Positions 4,316-47,753 of a stretch of DNA of 64,000 nucleotides are shown here, piece after piece. The translations under genes were made by a program, and so were the position numbers. The notes under the pieces are model-generated. The model did no database searches. It saw only the letters and a program-made list of their open reading frames with translations, and had not been told where the DNA came from. Position 1 is the stretch's first letter; each line of letters starts with the position of its first letter. The stretch lies in sequence record MK774614.2; one strand, written 5' to 3'.

Positions 4316-6334
4316 ATGAAGAAGATTAATCTACGCAATTGGGCTAACCTTGATTTAATCACTGTGCTCAATGACACTGAACGACGTTATAAATGCGAGG
4401 TCACAGATGACCAGGGTCAGAAAGTCATGACTGACTCGTGGCTCCTTGCACTGACGTGGTTCAGTCTTGGGGTTCACAGGGCATTTAATAAGGAACCTTA
4501 TCACATCGATGAGGTGGTGGTACTCAAAAGCGAAGAAGGACGCCAAGCATTTATTGATGATGACAAACTAAAAGGTCCGATTGATCGCTTCTTGGCACGC
4601 TTTATGCCAACTGTAGAAGATCCTGTAACGTACGATCTGATCAAACAACTGATCTTTGTATGGCACAACCAGATCCATAACTACATGTGCGTGAAATCAG
4701 AGACCGGGGTAGTATCTGCCACCTCCTTTGATATCAACCACTGCTACAAGAATCCAAAGATTGCTAGTTTACGTCAACGGGTGAAAACCCGGGAAACCAA
4801 TCTGGCCGACGCCTTGATGGAATTTGAACAGATCATGATGACCGACCCTGATTTTGATCGGTCTGTATTTGGATTGCTGTACCGCACTCGGGCAGTGTCG
4901 AGTGTCCAGTCATTTCAATTGGTCATTGCGCGAGGAGACGTGACTGACCTGAACTCTACCATTTTGCCAAACACCGTACTGGATTCTTACGGAGACGGAA
5001 TTACCAACCTGGCAGATTCCTTGGCAGACAGTAAAGGTGCGGGATTCTCTCTAATCTCTAACGGCTCTGCACTTAAAGACTCCGAATGGTTCCACAAGAA
5101 AGTCCATAACTTGGCTCAGGTTGTCCAAGGAATCAAGTATCAAACCGATTGTGGGTCTACCAAAGGGGTGAAGGTCAAAGTCATTAGTAAGGAGTTTCGC
5201 AGTTCCTTAGCGGGGAAATGGCAGATCCTGGATGACGGTTCTACTCGTTTACTTTATGGAGATGTGTTAAAGGAAATCAAGACAGGTGACTTTGTTAAGA
5301 TCCGATCCATTGCTTGGTGTAACCATGGCCGCACTGGTCGTCCTTGTTCCAAGTGTTTTGGTAAAATGGAATCGTCCGTTCCGTATAACCCCTACACTCA
5401 ACGCGGTGCAGTCCCCGGACTGTTCTACGGCTCTACCTTTGCAGAACCCATTGGTCAGTCTATTCTGAAAACCAAACACCGGATTGGGTCTGCGTCTGCT
5501 AAAGGGTATGTGGTTCATCCCCGAGACGCGGAATATATCAGAACGGATGAGGGCGGGGATTTTATCTACTTTAACGAGGAGATCTTAAATGGGACAGCGG
5601 ATCCTTATTTGATTTTGGATAAGGAAACACAACAGGACTTTTCTGATTACTCCTTTATGGAGTCATTGGATGAACTGGACGTCACCAGACTGAGAACTTA
5701 TGAGAGTATTAAACTCCGAGTTTCTGTCAGCAACCCCATGTTCCCTGAAGTGTTGGCAACCCATTATCCGATCATTGTGACGACAGTTGCGAGTCGTGAC
5801 GCGCGCATGACCAAGACCTTTGTTGAATACCTGATGAGTCAACCAATTGAAGAGGAGGGAAGAACCTACAAAATCTCGCTCAAAGGGTATGATCCACAAG
5901 AACCTGCATTTGAGCTTCCTCAGGTTAACGAGGATTTGGATGCATATCGTAAACGGGTAGAAAGTTTCTTTGCATTTAAAGAACTTCGCCACCGTTGGGA
6001 TTATACCATCACGGAGGAGATCCATGGCGAACTGATGGTGGGGCTTTGGAAAGTGGTAGATGAGAAATACAAGGGAGCGAATATTATTCTCCATGATATT
6101 TTCTTGTTCTCCTCTATGGCCAGAGACCCGGCAAACTTAAACTATGGGCTTCCCGCAGCGGGGGATGAACGGGTAATGATCTCCCTTCATGACGCGGTGA
6201 CACACCGCGGGATGTGTAACGCACTGCTCTACGGGTATCAGGGAGAATCTCTGCTCAATGATCCGTATCGCTTCTTAGTGCAAAACCGTCAAGGTGGTGG
6301 GCTGGAAGCGTTCTGTCAAACACTGGCTGACTAA
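4316..6334 (+). CDS. rpoC: Non-virion RNA polymerase beta' segment (phiKZ gp74-like)
   Basis: TDCGSTKG and IRSIAWCNH...PCSKCFG match the beta' C-terminal Zn site; AEPIGQSILKTKH resembles beta' GEPGTQLTMRTFH. Confidence 0.88.
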   Translation: MKKINLRNWANLDLITVLNDTERRYKCEVTDDQGQKVMTDSWLLALTWFSLGVHRAFNKEPYHIDEVVVLKSEEGRQAFIDDDKLKGPIDRFLARFMPTVEDPVTYDLIKQLIFVWHNQIHNYMCVKSETGVVSATSFDINHCYKNPKIASLRQRVKTRETNLADALMEFEQIMMTDPDFDRSVFGLLYRTRAVSSVQSFQLVIARGDVTDLNSTILPNTVLDSYGDGITNLADSLADSKGAGFSLISNGSALKDSEWFHKKVHNLAQVVQGIKYQTDCGSTKGVKVKVISKEFRSSLAGKWQILDDGSTRLLYGDVLKEIKTGDFVKIRSIAWCNHGRTGRPCSKCFGKMESSVPYNPYTQRGAVPGLFYGSTFAEPIGQSILKTKHRIGSASAKGYVVHPRDAEYIRTDEGGDFIYFNEEILNGTADPYLILDKETQQDFSDYSFMESLDELDVTRLRTYESIKLRVSVSNPMFPEVLATHYPIIVTTVASRDARMTKTFVEYLMSQPIEEEGRTYKISLKGYDPQEPAFELPQVNEDLDAYRKRVESFFAFKELRHRWDYTITEEIHGELMVGLWKVVDEKYKGANIILHDIFLFSSMARDPANLNYGLPAAGDERVMISLHDAVTHRGMCNALLYGYQGESLLNDPYRFLVQNRQGGGLEAFCQTLAD

Positions 6335-6339
6335 TCAAC

Positions 6340-6367
6340 CAATGGGGAGGGGAAACTCTCCCCATTG
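6340..6367 (+). terminator. GAAA-loop hairpin after nvRNAP beta'
   Basis: CAATGGGGAGGG-GAAA stem pairing with CTCTCCCCATTG. Confidence 0.55.
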
Positions 6368-6383
6368 TTACAAGGGGTGTTAA

Positions 6384-6644
6384 GTGGATATTAAAGCGCA
6401 ATTAGATCGAATCGAACAGAAACTGAATCTACTGTTAAGTAAGCACTTGGGATTAGTCAATCAACTTGACGGTTCCCAAAAGGACGCCAGTCATGTTCAT
6501 ACTGGCAATCTTCCACCTTTGAATATTTTCAAGTGCGATCGGTGCGAAGGGGACGAATTAGAAGTGATACCTCATCGAGTTGGCTCAGTGCGGTGTAAAC
6601 GTTGTAAACAATATGTGGTAATTAACACTACGTTATCTGAATAA
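6384..6644 (+). CDS. Small protein with N-terminal coiled coil and CxxC...CxxC zinc ribbon
   Basis: GTG start after AAGGGG RBS; CDRC and CKRC motifs. Confidence 0.7.
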   Translation: MDIKAQLDRIEQKLNLLLSKHLGLVNQLDGSQKDASHVHTGNLPPLNIFKCDRCEGDELEVIPHRVGSVRCKRCKQYVVINTTLSE

Positions 6645-6654
6645 GGATATTGAA

Positions 6655-6990
6655 ATGAAACGTCTTTTCTTAGTTAAAGAAGGTCAAGATCTCCTTCCTT
6701 ATCTGAATCCGACCTTGAACCAAGCGGGTGTCCCTAAAGCTAAGCTTAAGGTATTGAAAGCAGGAACAGATCTGATCCTTTCCTTTAAACAAGGCAAGTG
6801 CTTGATTACTCGGGCAGACATTCGCAAACCGTATCGTCACATGGTGTTCAATATGAATACCCCTATTCCTGACAAAGGACTTTGCCAAATTGAAATCTCA
6901 TGTTTAACCACACAGGGGTTCATTCCCAATTCTGTTGAAGGTTTGGACTGTTTTCAACAACCTGGTTCTGTCAATGTAAAAACAGCATAA
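6655..6990 (+). CDS. Hypothetical protein
   Basis: 111-aa ORF, AAGGA RBS, operon packing. Confidence 0.7.
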   Translation: MKRLFLVKEGQDLLPYLNPTLNQAGVPKAKLKVLKAGTDLILSFKQGKCLITRADIRKPYRHMVFNMNTPIPDKGLCQIEISCLTTQGFIPNSVEGLDCFQQPGSVNVKTA

Positions 6991-7005
6991 TAAAGAGGCT
7001 AAATA

Positions 7006-7389
7006 ATGAAAAAATTCTATTGCTTTACCGCAGGTCAACTTGTTCCTAAATGGGTTGTTGATTTTGTTTCCAAAGACCCAGAATCTGAATTTAATAACAA
7101 GAAAGCCAAGATCAGATTTATCACCAGTTGCATTGGCGTTCGGGACGGTAAGAACCAAGTTAAATTAATGCGACTTAAAAATGACAAAACTCCCGATCAT
7201 CTTCACGCTTATATTCAGATTACCAAAATGACTAACGCTGATGCAGGTGGTGTTGGAAAAGGAGCAGGGATTTCTGTTTGCGGAACCAATCACCAACACA
7301 TCTTTGGAGAAAGTAAGAAATACAACCTTTCTATTGTTAATGGAAAGGAAGTGCTTCAACAAGAAGAGTCTTCTGTTCTGCTATCGTAA
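7006..7389 (+). CDS. Hypothetical protein
   Basis: 127-aa ORF, GAGG RBS, followed by a palindrome. Confidence 0.7.
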   Translation: MKKFYCFTAGQLVPKWVVDFVSKDPESEFNNKKAKIRFITSCIGVRDGKNQVKLMRLKNDKTPDHLHAYIQITKMTNADAGGVGKGAGISVCGTNHQHIFGESKKYNLSIVNGKEVLQQEESSVLLS

Positions 7390-7393
7390 AAAT

Positions 7394-7413
7394 AAGGGAG
7401 AATATTCTCCCTT
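7394..7413. terminator. 20-bp palindrome
   Basis: AAGGGAGAATATTCTCCCTT followed by TT. Confidence 0.55.
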
Positions 7414-7529
7414 TTACAAAGCGGTTTAATATAATACACGAATAGGAATATAATAGAAAGTAATCGTTTGAGCCCGCATGAATGCTGGGTTTGTATTATT
7501 AATTCCTATGTGTTCAGTTGAGGTTTCTT

Positions 7530-9062
7530 ATGAGAACGACGTTGACAGTCTACAAGGCGAGTACATATGTCCGCCTGACGGACTTCAAACCTGAACTCGT
7601 TAGACAAGTATTAAGACCTTTTTGTAAAAGGAACTTCTTTCGATTTCAAAAAGTACCCGGAGAACTCTTTGGGACATTCAAGTGGGAAGTAAAACAAATC
7701 TACGCCCGCTTTAATCACGATCAAACCGAACTTCGTTTCAATCCATCTAAGTTAGAAGAATTGCTTAAACTGATGGAGTCTCAAGGTTATAAAAGAAGTC
7801 GGATAGAGATCAAAGACGAAAAACCCATTAAGGCAAAGAAAGTTTGCATTGAGCTGCTTAATCCTAACATAAAACCTCGCAATGAAATGCAAGAAGAGTA
7901 CTGCGAGTTTATGAGCGGGGAGAAGTCACTTGTTGTAAACAACATGGGAACAGGCCAGGGAAAGACATTTTGCGCTTTATACAGCGCATTAAATCTTGGT
8001 GAACGGATTATTATCACAGCACTTCCAAGATACGTTGATATTTGGATTAAAGCTTTTGGTGAGTTTTATAACATCAAACCTGACGACATTTTGTTAGCAG
8101 ACAGTATTGGTGTTGCAGAAGCTCATGAGTTGGTAAAAAGTGGAAAGGTTGATCCAAAGATCATTATTCTCCCTTTATCCAAAATCGACATCTATCTGAA
8201 GAAATGCAAAGAAGATCCTACCCTTCCAAGTCTTGATCAAGTTTATGCGGACATGGAAATAGGAACACGGATCATTGATGAAGCCCATGAGTCCATTTAT
8301 TCTGTTTATAACAGTTTGATGTATGGAAACGTCAACAAGACGATGATTTTGTCAGCGACCTTAAAGGGCGATGATGAATTCATTAATGGGATTTACTCGC
8401 AGATCTTCCCCCACTCAAGTTACCTAAAACCGCCCGAGTACACAAAGTACATTAAGGTTGTAGCGTATTATCACAAAATGAATTTGTGGCAATACAAAAT
8501 CAACACAAAAGGTTTTGGTGGTTATTCCCATGTCAAGTTTGAGCAAGGTATATTAAAACGCAAAGATGTGTTCGAGCGTTATTATCAAATGCTCAAAGGT
8601 GCCTACGAAATGTATTACATGGAAGGGTACCGGGAAAAACAGAAATCAATGTGGTTCTTTAGTACAACGGAGTTTTGCGAGAAGTTTAATGAACGGTTGT
8701 TGCAAGATTATCCAGATCTTGATTCAATTGTATTTAATTCATTGACAAGCAAAAAGAACCCTACGGCGTACAGAGAACACCAAAATGTGGTGACAACACC
8801 CGGATCGTGTGGGACTGGAAAAGACGTCCCCTACCTCTATGTCGTCTTCTCGCCTATCGCGGTTTCATCTTCACAACGTAATGACCAGATGGTGGGTCGA
8901 ACTCGCCCCATTGATAAATGGTGGCCTGATCTGGATCCCATCTTTGTTTATTTCGTCTGTGTGGATGAACCTAAACAATGCGAATACCATAGAAAACGTA
9001 AAGGAATATTCGAGAAAAAGATGAAAATCTTTGAGCCCATCGACAGTGGAGTTACTGTTTAA
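7530..9062 (+). CDS. Superfamily 2 helicase (phiKZ gp75-like)
   Basis: Motif I MGTGQGKT, motif II IIDEAHE, motif III LSAT, motif VI DQMVGRTR; start taken at ATG 7530 after GAGG. Confidence 0.92.
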   Translation: MRTTLTVYKASTYVRLTDFKPELVRQVLRPFCKRNFFRFQKVPGELFGTFKWEVKQIYARFNHDQTELRFNPSKLEELLKLMESQGYKRSRIEIKDEKPIKAKKVCIELLNPNIKPRNEMQEEYCEFMSGEKSLVVNNMGTGQGKTFCALYSALNLGERIIITALPRYVDIWIKAFGEFYNIKPDDILLADSIGVAEAHELVKSGKVDPKIIILPLSKIDIYLKKCKEDPTLPSLDQVYADMEIGTRIIDEAHESIYSVYNSLMYGNVNKTMILSATLKGDDEFINGIYSQIFPHSSYLKPPEYTKYIKVVAYYHKMNLWQYKINTKGFGGYSHVKFEQGILKRKDVFERYYQMLKGAYEMYYMEGYREKQKSMWFFSTTEFCEKFNERLLQDYPDLDSIVFNSLTSKKNPTAYREHQNVVTTPGSCGTGKDVPYLYVVFSPIAVSSSQRNDQMVGRTRPIDKWWPDLDPIFVYFVCVDEPKQCEYHRKRKGIFEKKMKIFEPIDSGVTV

Positions 9063-9066
9063 CATA
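9000..9066 (+). repeat. Copy 1 of the duplicated helicase 3' end (translated)
   Basis: Encodes KGIFEKKMKIFEPIDSGVTV* plus CATA; repeated at 10154-10220. Confidence 0.95.
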
Positions 9067-9075
9067 TATTAATAT

Positions 9076-9107
9076 GAACCACCAAGAACATGTGTTCTTG
9101 GTGGTTC
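9076..9107. terminator. 15-bp-stem hairpin between helicase and HNH gene
   Basis: GAACCACCAAGAACA-TG-TGTTCTTGGTGGTTC. Confidence 0.6.
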
Positions 9108-9126
9108 AGTCATTGACGGTGAACTT

Positions 9127-10167
9127 ATGGAAATTGACCAAAGATTGTTATTTTACAAACCCATTTCAATAATACTTGATTTTGATTGGGATACCAGTAG
9201 TTATGACGAGCGTGTTCAATTACGTCATAACTACGTCCAAGAACAAAAGAAGAAAAACCCTAACTATGTTGGTTGGGATTTCCCAGAACACTTTAGTAGT
9301 TTTTTTGGTGGTGGAAAAAATAAACACGCCGAAACGGTTGTTGATTTTTCAAGATTAGTAAGTACAACCGGACGGTTAATTTCCACCGGAAGAAAAAATC
9401 TGATTACAACTATTGGATATTCAAATGGCAAGGGTTATCTTGGATTTGACATAAAAACCAAGTCCAAAATTAAAAGATTAAAAGCGCATAGAGTAGTCGC
9501 ATGTACCTTTATCCCAATACCGGACCATTTAAATGAGTTTAAAGAAAAACTAGTAGTTAACCATAAAAACGATAATGGTTGCTGTAACTGGCAATCAAAT
9601 TTGGAATGGGTAACACAGCAAGAAAATGTAACTAAAGCTATTGAAACAGGTGCAAAAGACTCGACATATTTTAAATGCACTGTTAAGCTCCCAGGGAAAT
9701 TATTCGGAAAACAATATTACTTTTACCAAAACCCGGGGTTAAAGGCTTATGGGTTTGTTAATAGTGAAGTTTATAAATCCATTAATACCGGAAAGCTCTA
9801 TGTTCATTGTTTGTGGGAGATCGAGACTAAGCAAAATGCTGAAAATAAAACGTTGGGGATTCCCTTAGATGAACTTGCAATAATCAGAGATCCTAAAAAT
9901 GGCCGTTCCAACGCAAAAGGTGCGGTTGGAACGATAATGTCAGAAGGTCCATGCAAAGGTGAGCGGTTTGTTATTTATGGTAAAAAACAATTAAAAATGT
10001 TCGGGTTCCATGAAGGTATGGTCAGCGAATGCGTAAAAGGAAAAATTAAATACCATAGAGGATGTGTTTGGGAATACGTTTCTCGGAAAGAAGGATCTAA
10101 ATTTCAGCAGGGTTTAACCAAATCTCAAAAAGAACATATATTTCCGCAAGAGAAAAGGAATATTTGA
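9127..10167 (+). mobile_element. Free-standing HNH homing endonuclease gene with tandem C-terminal repeat domains
   Basis: AHRVVACTF...VVNHKNDNGCCNWQSNLEWVTQQEN is an HNH_3/I-HmuI-type motif; flanked by duplicated helicase end. Confidence 0.9.
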
Positions 10168-10220
10168 GAAGAAGATGAAAATCTTCGAACCCATTGATAG
10201 CGGAGTGACTGTTTAACATA
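10154..10220 (+). repeat. Copy 2 of the duplicated helicase 3' end (orphan; supplies the HNH stop codon in another frame)
   Basis: Same 20 codons plus TAA CATA with 8 third-position synonymous differences. Confidence 0.95.
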
Positions 10221-10230
10221 ATTCATAACT

Positions 10231-10259
10231 GACCTTAGAAGCTTATGGCTTCTAAGGTC
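10231..10259. terminator. 12-bp-stem hairpin
   Basis: GACCTTAGAAGC-TTATG-GCTTCTAAGGTC. Confidence 0.55.
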
Positions 10260-10283
10260 GTTACTTATGCTCAAGGTATAATT

Positions 10284-10787
10284 ATGCGTGTTTATCCATC
10301 TATTCCATTTGTTCATCCACCAGCGCAATTAAGCACCTTTGTCTTTTATATTGAGGAAGAGGTAGAAGAAGATCTTCTTCATGTCTTAGCAAGCGGATTG
10401 TGTACATTGATTGTCCACAGTAATGATGCTGGAGATGATGATATCGTCAATCCTTTTTCTATGGATCTTGCTAATTACCAGATGGGAGATATGTTAGCAG
10501 ATTGTTATGGTTCGATTGCAAACTTTGATAAGGAATACAGTTTTTGCACAGTTAAGTTAAAACAACTTGTACAAGAGCAAGGAAGCCTCCTTAATACGTT
10601 TGTAACAACGTCTGATAACATAGCCCAGTGTTTCTATCTGGTTAAGCCTAAAATGATTCATATCTCGATACAGGAAGGATTACCAAATGGTGAGAATCCC
10701 ACTATGATGGCAATACAAGCTGGTATCGAATCATTTAACGCCTACACGAATACCGTAGGAGGACAGTTGGAGTACCAACATGTTTGA
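10284..10787 (+). CDS. Acidic hypothetical protein
   Basis: ORF; ATG 10284 chosen because the upstream ATG lies inside the hairpin. Confidence 0.65.
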   Translation: MRVYPSIPFVHPPAQLSTFVFYIEEEVEEDLLHVLASGLCTLIVHSNDAGDDDIVNPFSMDLANYQMGDMLADCYGSIANFDKEYSFCTVKLKQLVQEQGSLLNTFVTTSDNIAQCFYLVKPKMIHISIQEGLPNGENPTMMAIQAGIESFNAYTNTVGGQLEYQHV

Positions 10788-11229
10788 TGAAGACTTATCA
10801 CACCTTGGGATTAACGTTTTTGAAACAGAAGAACCACCCGAGGTGTGTGATACCACTGTCACCACTTGGTTATTACCAAATCCTGTTTTTACCCAAGCTA
10901 TCGACACTCCTCAAGATCTCTTAATGGAGTACCTGTGTTATGCATTAGGAGAAACACTCATTGGTCCTCCCGGAAGTTATGACCCGATGATGGTGGGTGG
11001 TGAGGCGTTGTATAATAGCTTAGGTCCACTTGATAAAAATAACATTGATGCAATTGCTAAAGAAATTGAACAACATTATATTAGGATCTGTGACGATCCA
11101 GTGTTTTATAATCTTAATTATAGCGATGAAGGATTTTACCGATATGCAACCAACATTTACCCCCGGATCACCCGTTTCACCCTCTTCGCTGATCCAGACT
11201 TTAAAGTTGGATTCTGGGGTGGGGATTAA
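10780..11229 (+). CDS. Acidic hypothetical protein
   Basis: 149-aa ORF, GGAG RBS, overlaps previous stop. Confidence 0.7.
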   Translation: MFDEDLSHLGINVFETEEPPEVCDTTVTTWLLPNPVFTQAIDTPQDLLMEYLCYALGETLIGPPGSYDPMMVGGEALYNSLGPLDKNNIDAIAKEIEQHYIRICDDPVFYNLNYSDEGFYRYATNIYPRITRFTLFADPDFKVGFWGGD

Positions 11230-11713
11230 TACCGATATTGTTGTCTACAAATTTAATAGTATTGATTTGGAAGACTACGTAGAAGGTTGGAATGAGAACC
11301 AAATTACATTGGCACTGGAAGGTGCCTTAAACTTAATTTTCCATCCCTCAGTGACCAGTAATACAGAGATTTATGCAGGGGAACCTTGGAGCGAAATTGA
11401 AAACCAAATCGTGACCGAAACCGTTAACCTGATCCAATCTCATTCAGATGGATCAGAATTTGGATTTCGGTTATTTGATACTGAGGAAGAGGAAGAGCGA
11501 TGGGACCTCTTATTTTTAGAGCAAACTAACAACATAGAGGCTCAGTTTGGAAGTCTACTTGAAAAGTTAGCGGAAGACATTTCAAGTGATCATTATAACC
11601 CAGATGTCAATACCCTTTATGGGGAGATGATGTTATCTGCTAAATTGATTTTGCGAAGTTACGCTTATTACACAGACACCGGTGTATTACGTCTGGCTAT
11701 TCAATGCCAATAA
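11219..11713 (+). CDS. Acidic hypothetical protein
   Basis: Open frame 11030-11713; likely GTG start at 11219 overlapping the previous stop; start uncertain. Confidence 0.6.
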   Translation: MGINTDIVVYKFNSIDLEDYVEGWNENQITLALEGALNLIFHPSVTSNTEIYAGEPWSEIENQIVTETVNLIQSHSDGSEFGFRLFDTEEEEERWDLLFLEQTNNIEAQFGSLLEKLAEDISSDHYNPDVNTLYGEMMLSAKLILRSYAYYTDTGVLRLAIQCQ

Positions 11714-11729
11714 CAAAAGGACTAAGAAA

Positions 11730-12425
11730 ATGCAAAATAACAACATTACGTGTGCAACTATTCACCACAGTAACTTTTATGATTACCAAATCCCAATCGC
11801 TGTTCTTTACTTTAAGCCAGAAGACAAGGAACAAATTGTCGGTATATTGAAACGGTTTTATGGGTCGTTTTGGAAAATGGCCGAAGGTGATCTTATTCCA
11901 CCTACCATTGCGCTTCCTCCTGTACACAAAGTTGAAAACTACTTGTTATTCGTCGTTCCCGTTGGCGGAACTCCTGATACGGAAGTTCCAGAAATACTTG
12001 ATTTCAGAACGATGATCAAGAACAATCCTATCTCATTATGTCCAATTGGATATGAAGACTATCACGGTTCTACTATTCAAGAGTTCTTTGACCACCAAGA
12101 GGTTAATCGTTACCCCTTTGAACTTCCTTTAAGTACAAAGTCAAAACCAGCTCCTTTAGAATGGAGTTCCAAAACAGAACAAACTCTTACACTCCTAACA
12201 GAGTTAACTGATGACCCTCATCCACTTTCTAAAAAGCATTTGATTAAGCTTAAAGATAAGATCATCCTGGAATACAAGGAACAGCTCAAACAAGTGGTAA
12301 TGGAAACAGTGGAGTTAGAAAATAACCTCATTGAAATGGAAGCAGAGTTAGTTCGATTAAGAATGGAACTCACGGCCCTTCAAACTCAATTGTTAGATAA
12401 CGAGATTAAACAAGTAGAGCCATAA
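11730..12425 (+). CDS. Hypothetical protein with C-terminal coiled coil
   Basis: ATG 11730 after AAAAGGA; heptad-like C-terminus. Confidence 0.7.
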   Translation: MQNNNITCATIHHSNFYDYQIPIAVLYFKPEDKEQIVGILKRFYGSFWKMAEGDLIPPTIALPPVHKVENYLLFVVPVGGTPDTEVPEILDFRTMIKNNPISLCPIGYEDYHGSTIQEFFDHQEVNRYPFELPLSTKSKPAPLEWSSKTEQTLTLLTELTDDPHPLSKKHLIKLKDKIILEYKEQLKQVVMETVELENNLIEMEAELVRLRMELTALQTQLLDNEIKQVEP

Positions 12426-12436
12426 CCACATCAACG

Positions 12437-12469
12437 TCCCTCACACTCCTGATAAAGGAGTGTGAGGGA
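12437..12469. terminator. 14-bp-stem hairpin upstream of the second HNH gene
   Basis: TCCCTCACACTCCT-GATAA-AGGAGTGTGAGGGA. Confidence 0.55.
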
Positions 12470-12494
12470 GATATCGATCATAAAAGAGCAAATT

Positions 12495-13532
12495 ATGTTT
12501 AATACAGGAATAGAGTACACAGCCATTAAGCCGTTATCAGAAATCTTAAATATTGATTATGATAAAACCACGGTCACAGAACGTGCTAAAATGCGTTATG
12601 ATTACATAATGTCTGAAATAGCAAAAGGAAGTGACGATGTTTTCTGGGACTACTTAGAATATATTCCAGGTGTGCTTGGAAGAAACGGTTCTAAAATACC
12701 TCCATGGAGAACTGAACAGACATTAATAAACATCTATGGTGAAGCTGGAACAAACATCAAAGGAAACTTATGGACTTATAAGGGAACCGTTGATGCAAGA
12801 GGCTATGTTAAAATTGTTGTTAGGTCACCGGCATTATCTTTTAGTATCTCAGCCCACCGTGCCGCTGCCTCTACTTTTATTCCTATGGAGACACTTGATC
12901 AAACCTTACAGGTTAATCACATTGATGCCATCAAAACAAATAATTATTTCAAGAACTTTGAATGGGTAACGCATCAAGAAAACTCCCAACATGCTGTCAG
13001 TATGGGTATTGACGTCGGTATCAACAATAAGAACACGAAACCGATCCTAGGAACGTGGATTATTCCTGATGAGGATTACGGAACAAGTTTCGTGTTAGTC
13101 GGGAAAACCGAGATCTTTGCCGCCGGGTTAAATGCACCTAGTATCCATCAAGCGGCGGATAATCCCACCATAGTCAGATATGGGTGTATTTGGAAATACG
13201 TCCCCAAGGAAGACGTCCCATTGGTACATAATGGGGTTCCAGAGACATTAACCGACAAGATAAAGGATCTTGCTTATACAAACATGAATACGGAACCTGT
13301 AAAAGCAACGATTAACGTAGAGGGGAAACATAAAGGTGAGGAATTTTGTGTTTACGGAGCCTCTAGATTAAAGGAACTTGGATTTTTAGGTCCGCATATT
13401 TTAAATGTGGTGAAAGGAAAGTTGAAAACTCATGGTGGTTGCAAGTGGATAAAGGTGTCCAGAGAAGAAGCAATGCTTTTGCAACGTGACCCAACTCCAG
13501 AACAACTCAAATTTTTATTTCCAAATAAATAA
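12495..13532 (+). mobile_element. Second free-standing HNH homing endonuclease gene, paralog of 9127
   Basis: SAHRAAASTF...QVNHIDAIKTNNYFKNFEWVTHQEN; same tandem C-terminal repeats ending GC.W..V; start could be GTG 12462. Confidence 0.88.
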
Positions 13533-13534
13533 GA

Positions 13535-13568
13535 AGCTTCTATTCCTCTTTAAAGAGGAATAGAAGCT
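13535..13568. terminator. Perfect 34-bp palindrome between convergent genes
   Basis: AGCTTCTATTCCTCTTTAAAGAGGAATAGAAGCT. Confidence 0.7.
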
Positions 13569-13586
13569 ATTAAACTAAAGTTTTAT

Positions 13587-14882
13587 TTATCTAAACATAT
13601 CGTCAAATGGAACAGTGATGGTCTTTAACTGAGAAACGTGGACGCTCTTCATTCTCGTTAAAAGATACTGGGTAAATATAAACGTAACTTCCGCCGATAA
13701 CCTTTCTTTTATTCCACCAAGTTTATCACCACAACAGATTCGGCAAAGATTATCTTCAGGTTCTTTGCAAAACTGAGGAACACGCATCTGAAGTGTTTGA
13801 CCTATCAGGTGAGTGTCATCACGTTTTATATAAACCGGTTTCCCATCAACCATATGGAAACCAGCTACCCAGCCTTTAAAGTTTCTTTTATTAAGTGTAA
13901 CAGATTCAGTTCTAGTGGTTCCGCAGTCAGTATCAATGGCTAACATTCGGTTAGTTAACAAAATAGCCAGTTTTACTTCGGCACCGCCTTCACCGGTTGC
14001 ATTACCACGATCGTAAGATCCTGAAATAGCTGTGTTAATATATCCCGGGTAATTTTTCTTATCCCACCCTTCATTAAGCGAGTTACGGAGCAAGGTGTAT
14101 TTACCGGTGTTAAAATCAGGGACCATATCGAAAATAATGAACATTTTCTTACGGGCGTTATCAATGAACTTCCCGTTGATAAAGAAGTCTTTAGATGGGC
14201 CTGACAATTGGATTTTGGCATCTAGCGCCACTACTTCGTCAATCACCATGGCAACTGCAGTGGGATCATTGAGTTTGTCTTGTTCTTCCAGCTCTTTTAA
14301 TAGTTTATCTCGAAGGGCAATCACTTCTGGGTGAACAGTCAAGACATCTAAAGAAGAAGCCTTCACAAATACTTGGTTCATCCCTTCTAGGTAATCCAAG
14401 TTCTTTGTAATTGCCAAACATTGCGAGACAGTGGCTTTGCCTTCTGGAGGCGTGTCAGTATCATCCACCATGATTTGATCGATCAGGGCTTTTACAGTCC
14501 CTGCTGTGATCTGCCCGTTAATGAAACTTCCCGCTTTTCCAACAGCTTCATAAATCGCAATGATGTTAGTTAAGAAAATCCCAACGGTAGTTTCGATGCG
14601 CTCTTTTACAAACGAGTGGATGTCCGCATTAACGACAAGGGGTTCGTTCTTATGGAACAGTGCATGATCGTAATTAGGATGCTCTACAACGACTTTCTCC
14701 TTACCTTTAAAGAAGTAGACCTGCTTGAGCTTATCGTCTCTGAAAAGTGCGTAGGGAGCGCTTTGAAGCTTCTTTCTATTCTCAGGTGTGTCTTTGACAA
14801 TAGAGAAGATAGAGAGTAGAAAGGTTTTTCGGATATAAGCGCGATGGTTAAACGCTTCAAATAAATAATCGAACTTATTCAT
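13587..14882 (-). CDS. rpoC: Virion RNA polymerase beta' segment (phiKZ gp80-like)
   Basis: GSYDRGNATGEGG, DTDCGT and MRVPQFCK...LCRICCG match beta' bridge-helix and Zn-site regions. Confidence 0.85.
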   Translation of the reverse strand: MNKFDYLFEAFNHRAYIRKTFLLSIFSIVKDTPENRKKLQSAPYALFRDDKLKQVYFFKGKEKVVVEHPNYDHALFHKNEPLVVNADIHSFVKERIETTVGIFLTNIIAIYEAVGKAGSFINGQITAGTVKALIDQIMVDDTDTPPEGKATVSQCLAITKNLDYLEGMNQVFVKASSLDVLTVHPEVIALRDKLLKELEEQDKLNDPTAVAMVIDEVVALDAKIQLSGPSKDFFINGKFIDNARKKMFIIFDMVPDFNTGKYTLLRNSLNEGWDKKNYPGYINTAISGSYDRGNATGEGGAEVKLAILLTNRMLAIDTDCGTTRTESVTLNKRNFKGWVAGFHMVDGKPVYIKRDDTHLIGQTLQMRVPQFCKEPEDNLCRICCGDKLGGIKERLSAEVTFIFTQYLLTRMKSVHVSQLKTITVPFDDMFR

Positions 14883-18120: not shown

Positions 18121-18566
18121 CGCCAGCTGATTCACCAAACTTTGCAAAACGGTGGTTAGAAAGTGCGACCAAATTTCTATTTGGGGTTTATCGCAAGCAG
18201 AGTGTCTCCACGATGGAGACACTCCTTGCCGAGCATCGTGCTTACTGCCTGTCTTATGGATGGGTCAGTGAAAAGGAATCGATGGCTACTGCAATCGATT
18301 ACAACCACAAACGCCGTGATTTCTTTCACATCTTTTCTGCAAAGTCAATTGGTGAAACATTCGGGCGTAGAGAATATGATACGCTCATTCCATTGAAAGA
18401 TTACATGGATTCCCCTATGCACTTAATCGAAGATCTTCTGGAAGGGGTAGCAGAAGGTAAGCGCAAAGCCAAGATTGCGGCTGAGCAAGCGGTTAAGAAT
18501 AAGATGGGGAATTTAAGTCCCGAACAAATTGTTCAAAAACAGATAAATAAAGAGATGCAAAGATGA
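18045..18566 (+). CDS. -1 frame extension (candidate 'T') of the 545-aa gene; alternatively a 117-aa gene from ATG 18213
   Basis: Frame open 18015-18566; no ATG/GTG/TTG in frame before 18213; no clear RBS there. Confidence 0.6.
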   Translation, partial: FFRPGPDVDYGTAGHGSLSRGSSFLTPADSPNFAKRWLESATKFLFGVYRKQSVSTMETLLAEHRAYCLSYGWVSEKESMATAIDYNHKRRDFFHIFSAKSIGETFGRREYDTLIPLKDYMDSPMHLIEDLLEGVAEGKRKAKIAAEQAVKNKMGNLSPEQIVQKQINKEMQR

Positions 18567-20204: not shown

Positions 20205-20238
20205 AGAGCCACCTAACCCAATTGGGTTAGGTGGCTCT
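20205..20238. terminator. Perfect 34-bp palindrome
   Basis: AGAGCCACCTAACCCAATTGGGTTAGGTGGCTCT. Confidence 0.65.
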
Positions 20239-28522: not shown

Positions 28523-28555
28523 CCTACCCTTACTCCTGATGGGAGTAAGGGTAGG
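28523..28555. terminator. 14-bp-stem hairpin between convergent genes
   Basis: CCTACCCTTACTCC-TGATG-GGAGTAAGGGTAGG. Confidence 0.7.
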
Positions 28556-47719: not shown

Positions 47720-47753
47720 AGCTACTTCTAGACCATCAGGTCTAGAAGTAGCT
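47720..47753. terminator. 15-bp-stem hairpin between convergent genes
   Basis: AGCTACTTCTAGACC-ATCA-GGTCTAGAAGTAGCT. Confidence 0.7.

Follow-up and report, generated by a model that had tools for sequence, protein, structure and literature searches.

In fungal mitochondria, endonuclease genes known as mobile open reading frames (mORFs) bring a replacement C-terminus to the gene that they enter and leave the native one downstream, as in atp6 of Allomyces macrogynus and atp6, atp9, cox2, and nad3 of Glomus (PMC3630166). Here, we analyze a 64,000-nucleotide (nt) stretch of Aeromonas phage CF8 (MK774614.2; hereafter, the window) in which an HNH endonuclease-type gene, CF8_0075, stands between two copies of the 3' end of the helicase gene CF8_0074. 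We read this locus, with a probability of about 0.7, as a free-standing and putatively mobile homing endonuclease cassette, the phage counterpart of mitochondrial mORFs with a duplicated C-terminus, on the basis of sequence comparison and of analogy with these elements.

The likeness to mORFs extends over the whole layout. In both cases, a conserved gene carries an in-phase replacement C-terminus, followed by an endonuclease open reading frame (ORF) and a second C-terminal copy; the copies are similar as protein but diverged as DNA, and ORF-free relatives have a single end (PMC3630166). Unlike the mORFs, the CF8 element is an I-HmuI-like HNH gene in a phage, written as a separate ORF that follows the helicase stop codon and a hairpin, has its own start, and enters the second copy out of frame. 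Some mORFs are fused in phase to the host gene, which the CF8 ORF is not. The enzymes known from mitochondrial mORFs are of the LAGLIDADG or GIY-YIG types.

Phage homing endonucleases offer further points of comparison. I-HmuI, a nicking endonuclease of Bacillus phage SPO1 (PDB 1U3E), resembles CF8_0075 in the HNH_3 motif and in a C-terminal DNA-binding part that is extended and modular. However, I-HmuI has 174 amino acids and is encoded in a group I intron, whereas CF8_0075 is free-standing and has 346, including an additional domain at the N-terminus and two repeated modules at the C-terminus. The T4-type SegF, SegG, SegB, and MobE resemble the CF8 element in being free-standing, located by or in conserved genes, and patchy in distribution; they spread with their flanks via recombination repair (PMC2988022), as the CF8 cassette may do. 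In a similar arrangement to that in CF8, seg43(25) of Aeromonas phage 25 has a very stable hairpin just upstream of its ribosome-binding site (PMC2988022). Seg and Mob genes lie between genes or split a gene (e.g., mobE in Aeh1 nrdA), whereas the CF8 cassette brings a replacement gene end; no duplicated gene end is described in the T4 homing review (PMC2988022), from whose text the word stem "duplicat" is absent. Within the same phage family, PhiPA3 gp210 is an intron-encoded HNH enzyme in a Chimalliviridae RNA polymerase gene that acts in competition between co-infecting relatives (PMC11620839; PMC12908238). Like CF8_0075, it belongs to a nucleus-forming jumbo phage, and it targets a conserved gene of the essential type (PMC11620839), as CF8_0075 may do; gp210 occupies a self-splicing intron, whereas the CF8 gene uses a duplicated gene end. 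A phage homing endonuclease with a duplicated gene end was not found in the literature searched, which included PMC2988022 and the ICP1 nuclease study PMC10448857 and is no proof of absence.

Two helicase ends around one HNH gene

The 3.3 kb around the locus are 100% identical to the CF8 record (238 kb), and record coordinates minus 62,000 give the window coordinates used throughout; the genes, tail copies, and hairpins of the locus all lie on the + strand. CF8 is a Chaoshanvirus of the family Chimalliviridae (nucleus-forming jumbo phages), and its record lists CF8_0074 as "putative DNA helicase/terminase" and CF8_0075 as "putative HNH endonuclease." CF8_0074 (7530 to 9062; longest ORF from 7518) specifies a superfamily 2 DEAH helicase, as assigned by Pfam (DEAD/ResIII) and PHROG (DNA helicase), of a type kept across Chimalliviridae-type jumbo phages.

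A repeat search returned a 67-nt direct repeat at 9000 to 9066 and 10154 to 10220 (identity, 59/67; spacing, 1,154 nt). In agreement with the first-pass annotation, which had reported this repeat from the letters alone, all eight differences are silent and affect third codon positions in the frame of the helicase. Only 19% of single changes in these 63 coding nt are silent, and the probability that eight random changes would all be so is ~2e-6 to 8e-6. At the protein level, the repeat reaches three codons farther 5', to 23 identical residues and the stop (codons 8991 to 9059 and 10145 to 10213), the extra Arg-Lys-Arg being written AGA AAA CGT upstream (8991 to 8999) and CGC AAG AGA downstream (10145 to 10153). 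Copy A (8991 to 9066), delimited by repeat and codon comparison, thus comprises the last 23 helicase codons (RKRKGIFEKKMKIFEPIDSGVTV), the stop TAA, and CATA. It is the functional end of the helicase and completes the ORF, so that the gene is kept whole without splicing, as had been suggested. Copy B (10145 to 10220) holds 23 orphan tail codons, stop, and CATA, with the amino acids of copy A and 13/69 nt different; its 5' end also serves, in another frame, as the C-terminus of the HNH protein. Over 69 nt, A and B are 75 to 81% identical, with identical runs of at most 14 nt. These silent-only differences bear out the earlier proposal that the copies diverged while both were coding.

The HNH gene itself spans 9127 to 10167. 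Its product matches Pfam HNH_3 (25.6 bits versus a cut-off of 24.8) and several PHROG HNH families, and the sole significant PDB sequence match is I-HmuI 1U3E (E value, 7e-5), aligned to I-HmuI residues 38 to 106. H146, N158, and N167, in the catalytic His/Asn/Asn columns, are invariant in a 32-sequence alignment; among 45 relatives, conservation of the NH...N...N columns is at least 90%. An AlphaFold2 model built on 32 relatives has a predicted local distance difference test score of 90.6; when compared with PDB by Foldseek, 1u3e_M was the only match with an E value of <0.001 (1.2e-6; probability, 1.00), at a template modeling score of 0.47 on the target, a low global value explained by CF8_0075 being twice as long as I-HmuI and modular. 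The orthologue in phage ZPAH34 is 64% identical in amino acids, and the ratio of nonsynonymous to synonymous substitution rates (dN/dS) of ~0.17 indicates purifying selection on the protein. From sequence and model together, CF8_0075 is an intact, free-standing gene of the I-HmuI-like HNH homing endonuclease type, with a predicted nuclease as its product.

The start codon of the HNH gene lies 64 nt past the helicase stop, these being the only 64 nt of insert outside the ORF, and the ORF has the same length as free-standing paralogues. The TGA stop (10165 to 10167) sits 12 nt inside the downstream member of the 67-nt repeat, in a frame one base behind that of the helicase. In HNH relatives, a few residues follow a conserved EHIF(G) motif before the end; in CF8 and ZPAH34 the motif passes directly into copy B, so that the gene has lost its own stop; the first reading of the ORF as one that borrows its stop from copy B in another frame was therefore correct. 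Rfam cmscan over 8700 to 10500, at E values up to 10, detected no group I or group II intron and returned only chance hairpin matches. An interpretation of the locus as a spliced intron was rejected, given the lack of a matching Rfam intron model and the complete unspliced helicase ORF.

Behind each tail copy come an AT-rich spacer and a distinct strong hairpin, as had also been seen at first inspection. Hairpin A (9075 to 9108; 16-bp perfect stem, 2-nt loop, -26.7 kcal/mol, z-score of -4.6) ends 18 nt 5' of the HNH start and leaves the HNH ribosome-binding region uncovered. Hairpin B (10231 to 10259; 13- to 14-bp stem, -26.2 kcal/mol, z-score of -5.6) lies directly 3' of the single helicase tail in every HNH-minus relative and is thus the native hairpin of the helicase 3' end. 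Native counterparts of hairpin B in other lineages can be aligned with hairpin A, which has the motif ACT(G/A)AC...ACCAAG in common with those of AVP1 and ACP1. The ZPAH34 homologue of hairpin A differs by compensatory changes and has ACT(A/G)AC..TACCAAG in common with the same native AVP1 and ACP1 hairpins. Hairpin A is therefore probably a helicase 3'-end or terminator-type hairpin by these alignments, and its membership in the native class implies that the duplicated module consists of tail, spacer, and hairpin. Together, the upstream tail and hairpin A resemble the 3' end of a different helicase allele with its terminator.

Such structures are frequent in the window, which holds 13 perfect hairpins with stems of at least 11 bp (11 to 13 bp; e.g., 1509 to 1538, 18200 to 18224, 20205 to 20238, 28523 to 28555, and 47720 to 47753) versus 0 to 1 in shuffled sequence; few are followed by a T-run. 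Within 6000 to 14500, perfect hairpins adjoin gene ends. The 13 hairpins may serve CF8 as its customary elements for transcript ends or RNA stability.

Presence and absence of the cassette among relatives

ZPAH34, of the same genus and ~71% identical to CF8 in DNA, has the same order of tail A, hairpin A, HNH gene, tail B, and hairpin B, with the same junction. The isolate AerS_266 and two groups of assembled contigs, L018/L019 and L020, which were reached via the helicase protein in a large protein collection, lack the HNH gene and carry a single tail followed by hairpin B and the next gene. The latter, hypothetical gene CF8_0076 (10284 to 10787) in the window, provides the right-hand homology flank in common with HNH-minus relatives. 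L018 is the closest relative of CF8 (the L018/L019 helicase is 90% identical to that of CF8), and L020 is ~95% DNA-identical to ZPAH34. The HNH gene is thus present (CF8, ZPAH34) or absent (AerS_266, L018/L019, L020) among close relatives at exactly the site singled out by the first-pass annotation, and two tail copies occur in none of the HNH-minus loci examined. The more distant Ferozepurvirus, Ludhianavirus, AhC3_1, and L021 likewise lack the HNH gene and have a single tail with a single same-class hairpin. No further HNH-plus genome turned up in IMG/VR, JGI metagenomes, or the ~5.8-billion-protein collection: scans of IMG/VR with both proteins (HNH and helicase) and with a degenerate pattern for the tail gave no match, nor did scans of JGI metagenomes with this pattern.

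Which copy looks native differs among these phages. The AerS_266 tail is somewhat nearer to copy B of ZPAH34 (9/69 differences) than to its copy A (11/69), and its 3' flank is identical to the copy B flank. The L018 tail, in contrast, differs from copy A of CF8 at 5/69 positions and from copy B at 13/69, with the match to the B flank starting just after TAACATA. L020 is chimeric: its tail is A-like over the first two thirds, with one exception among the informative sites up to GAC, and entirely B-like from AGT onward, over the last five codons and the flank; its 3' flank is 100% identical to that of ZPAH34 for ~200 nt to the right of copy B. The expectation that an HNH-minus end should resemble the downstream copy, which is native in mORFs, agrees with ZPAH34 versus AerS_266 and is contradicted by CF8 versus L018, with the L020 chimera in between. 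The mobile unit had been proposed to be the replacement helicase end, hairpin, and HNH ORF. The upstream module does resemble the 3' end of another allele, in keeping with this proposal, but the unit is not fixed and crossovers can fall anywhere in the repeat; between CF8 and its nearest empty site, the differing unit is hairpin A, the HNH gene, and copy B.

These comparisons indicate that recombination within the repeated tail brings about gain or loss of the cassette, at a crossover place that varies, and that the copy that looks native differs by lineage. The single-switch mosaics of L020 and L018 are compatible with recombination at the site, as are the stretches of 100% identity between ZPAH34 and L020. 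Gain, by break repair on an HNH-plus template, and loss, by an A × B crossover, leave the same pattern, so that neither direction nor nuclease dependence can be read from it. For the same reason, we rejected the deduction of a cleavage site from the switch points (GAC|AGT in L020/ZPAH34; after TAACATA in L018/CF8).

Silent sites are saturated between CF8 and ZPAH34, the proportion of differing silent sites (pS) being 0.66 in the HNH gene, 0.75 in the helicase gene, and 0.79 in the RNA polymerase gene. They are also saturated between copies A and B (11/13.3 in CF8 and 14/14.2 in ZPAH34), which differ by 0 and 1 amino acid changes, respectively. To judge from these values, the distance between the alleles from which A and B derive is about that between species of the genus. 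A recent homing event, as first envisaged, is not supported, since the same junction is found in two phages with saturated silent sites and A/B divergence is saturated too; dating of the event by silent divergence was rejected on this account. Differences between the copies B of CF8 and ZPAH34 are mainly silent, as in the A-to-A comparison, and copy B keeps the residue of its lineage (Glu in CF8 and L018; Thr in ZPAH34, L020, and AerS_266). Both features argue that copy B has not been drifting as dead DNA since the CF8/ZPAH34 split. The pattern fits flanking copies that are repeatedly exchanged with functional alleles. Survival bias would fit too, the most diverged repeats marking the least easily deleted cassettes.

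Proposed origin and spread, and competing explanations

From the anatomy of the locus, the gene family, the presence or absence of the cassette at one site, the common junction, and the mosaic tails, we infer the following scenario, nuclease activity, cleavage position, and direction of events included. In a donor phage, an ordinary free-standing HNH gene would have lain just 3' of the helicase terminator hairpin. Upon breakage of a recipient helicase tail, repair would have copied the donor tail, hairpin, and HNH gene, and the copied strand would have been joined illegitimately to the recipient broken end at the Arg-Lys-Arg-Lys-Gly codons, a joining that would delete the HNH stop and orphan the recipient tail. 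The product would be a cassette of helicase tail A, spacer, hairpin A, and HNH body, followed by a second 3' module of tail B, spacer, and hairpin B. The identical junction in CF8 and ZPAH34 argues for a single origin event. At co-infection, this composite might home into HNH-minus relatives through left-hand homology in the helicase gene and right-hand homology in tail B, hairpin B, and the next gene; clean loss would be equally possible via recombination of tail A with tail B. Crossovers at varied points in the 69- to 76-bp repeat would generate A-like, B-like, or chimeric HNH-minus tails. Part of each copy would be replaced by a functional allele per event, which would explain why both copies have diverged only silently.

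Several observations weigh against this scenario. The orphan copy B is a perfect (CF8) or near-perfect (ZPAH34) protein match to copy A despite saturated silent sites. The genus is represented by two HNH-plus and three HNH-minus genomes among ~5.8 billion proteins, a sample in which gain and loss are indistinguishable. Copy A differs from the nearest HNH-minus tails at only 5 to 6 of 69 nt, so that self-immunity by recoding, the removal of the element's own cleavage site that had been proposed at first, is not evident. Finally, the flanking duplication is absent at the other HNH-family sites examined and is not a general family property; the seven sites inspected were CF8 HNH2, PS1_0046, AVP1_0056, N1M2_63, ACP1_0145, PS1_0078, and, as a positive control, ZPAH34. 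I-HmuI-type enzymes cut intron-plus as well as intron-minus DNA, and strict self-immunity may thus not be required. In favor of mobility, related jumbo phages carry several members of the CF8_0075 family, dispersed among intergenic positions away from the helicase gene, a distribution to be expected of mobile homing endonuclease genes; metagenomic relatives P0005, P0006, and P0008 are again located elsewhere, either ahead of a gene of the tail-fibre type or behind an SMC-like one.

The common junction in CF8 and ZPAH34 would also follow from purely vertical descent of an ancestral cassette, with an immobile or domesticated nuclease (e.g., a weapon against co-infecting relatives like that described for the PhiPA3 intron endonuclease) and HNH-minus loci arising by tail-tail deletion only. 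The HNH pS of 0.66 is about as deep as that of flanking genes (0.70 to 0.79), as this explanation predicts, although at saturated silent sites equal depth is no proof. L020 and L018 do resemble single A × B crossovers, and a competitive role of a jumbo-phage HNH enzyme is documented (PMC11620839; review, PMC12908238). However, decay would be expected of a tail that has been an orphan since CF8 and ZPAH34 separated, whereas B-to-B differences are silent-biased like those between the copies A, and the 75 to 81% identity of A and B, in runs of at most 14 nt, makes three independent precise deletions less easy. We therefore hold vertical descent to be unlikely. The orphan copy poses a similar difficulty for a local tandem duplication of the helicase 3' end, with later insertion of the HNH gene between copies that diverged in place. 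The direct-repeat geometry and the inclusion of the spacer and a same-class hairpin in the repeat speak for such a duplication, but divergence in place would have struck the orphan at all codon positions, and silent changes only are seen. Besides, the HNH frame continues directly into copy B and has lost its own stop, which points to breakage and joining and not to insertion between two complete copies, and no HNH-minus locus examined has two copies; this history is highly improbable.

Continued translation of copy B would account for its conservation in another manner. A +1 slip at AAA-AGG (10153 to 10158) would add the last 20 helicase residues to the nuclease, or reinitiation at the tail ATG, 4 to 8 nt past the HNH stop, would yield a 13-residue peptide; purifying selection on copy B would then be real. 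The near absence of amino acid differences from copy A (0 in CF8, 1 in ZPAH34) at saturated silent sites and the retained lineage Glu or Thr are as expected under translation. Furthermore, a shift of exactly +1 leads from the HNH frame to that of the helicase, AAA-AGG stands at the junction in both phages, and AGG is the rarest Arg codon (1.5 per 1,000 codons). A scan for tRNA genes detected none in the 64-kb window, and accordingly no phage tRNA for AGG there. Nevertheless, AAA-AGG is inherited from the helicase Arg-Lys-Gly codons and carries no extra information, the frame relation has a chance of 1/3, other ORFs of the window contain the motif in frame four times, no stimulatory element accompanies it at the junction, and refreshing of copy B by recombination with functional alleles gives the same pattern. 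Translation of copy B is thus very unlikely, and fusion of the conserved 20-residue helicase C-terminal peptide to the HNH nuclease by the +1 slip in particular is slightly less credible again. If true, the slip would explain a protein-perfect copy B in two silent-saturated lineages and could lend the nuclease the partner-binding or compartment-targeting tail of the helicase in a nucleus-forming phage. Conservation of copy B would also be explained if 8991 to 10144 were a mobile group I intron or other spliced element with an HNH ORF, copy B completing the helicase. Splicing would give the same protein, and I-HmuI-type enzymes are typically intron-encoded. Against this stand the lack of any Rfam group I/II match at permissive thresholds, the mere 64 nt outside an ORF that is as long as its free-standing paralogues, and the completeness of the unspliced helicase ORF, which together render the intron scarcely credible.

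Neighboring selfish elements and significance

Other members of the HNH family and an intein accompany the cassette in these genomes. An intergenic mini-ORF of 20 codons at 1988 to 2050 (MDIDKELLSYDPISIILKID, then stop), upstream of a gene for a 704-amino-acid RNA polymerase subunit, is 65% identical to the first 20 residues of CF8_0075 (E value, 0.02) and looks, by this match, like what is left of a deleted gene for an HNH homing endonuclease. A second paralogue, CF8_0080 (12495 to 13532), 28% identical to CF8_0075, has perfect 13-bp hairpins at 12437 to 12469 and 13535 to 13568 and adjoins the 3' end of a convergent virion RNA polymerase beta'-like gene; no flanking duplication was found around it. 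CF8_0080 and an extra ORF, CF8_0079, are present in CF8 and L018 and absent from ZPAH34, AerS_266, and L020. In three genera, HNH genes of the same family occupy the same intergenic spot, just before the 3' end of a convergent gene in the virion RNA polymerase beta'-like position (L013:2480-3544 in N1M2, L008:7588-8652 in ACP1, L006:7360-8685 in PS1, and L018:8459-9496). This recurrence suggests that the 3' end of the beta'-like gene is a second recurrent homing site.

PS1_0078 (441 amino acids) looks like a fusion of two partial HNH copies. On a metagenomic Ferozepurvirus-like contig (L016:512-4044), an HNH gene starts 5 nt past the stop of an 827-amino-acid SMC-like gene with no hairpin between them; an upstream hairpin is thus not a constant part of the cassettes of this family.

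The helicase gene itself is the target of another element. An intein interrupts the Walker A loop (GK|T) of the helicase in 3/3 HNH-minus Chaoshanvirus-type helicases, with inserts of 204, 231, and 352 amino acids that begin with Ala, not Cys or Ser (L018:~4436-5050; same site in L020 and in L003, i.e., AerS_266). It is absent from both HNH-plus helicases, those of CF8, where the empty site lies at ~7957 of the window, and ZPAH34. This exclusivity could be chance (~1 in 10, with five genomes) or reflect two selfish elements 1 kb apart that exclude each other.

A homing endonuclease gene can usually occupy an essential gene harmlessly only with the help of an intron or an intein. The CF8 cassette would represent a third solution in a phage, in which a spare copy of the gene end is brought along, as documented so far in fungal mitochondria; it is a tidy, testable case and not a new principle. 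The system is experimentally tractable, since ZPAH34 (with the cassette), AerS_266 (without it), and CF8 are isolated Aeromonas phages. It would permit measurement of the position of the cut, of how crossovers in a 70-bp recoded repeat decide between gain and loss, and of whether silent divergence of the repeat protects the element from deletion. The locus also bears on competition between selfish elements, as the helicase carries either the cassette or the P-loop intein ~1 kb upstream, and never both in five genomes, and on nuclease action between co-infecting nucleus-forming phages.

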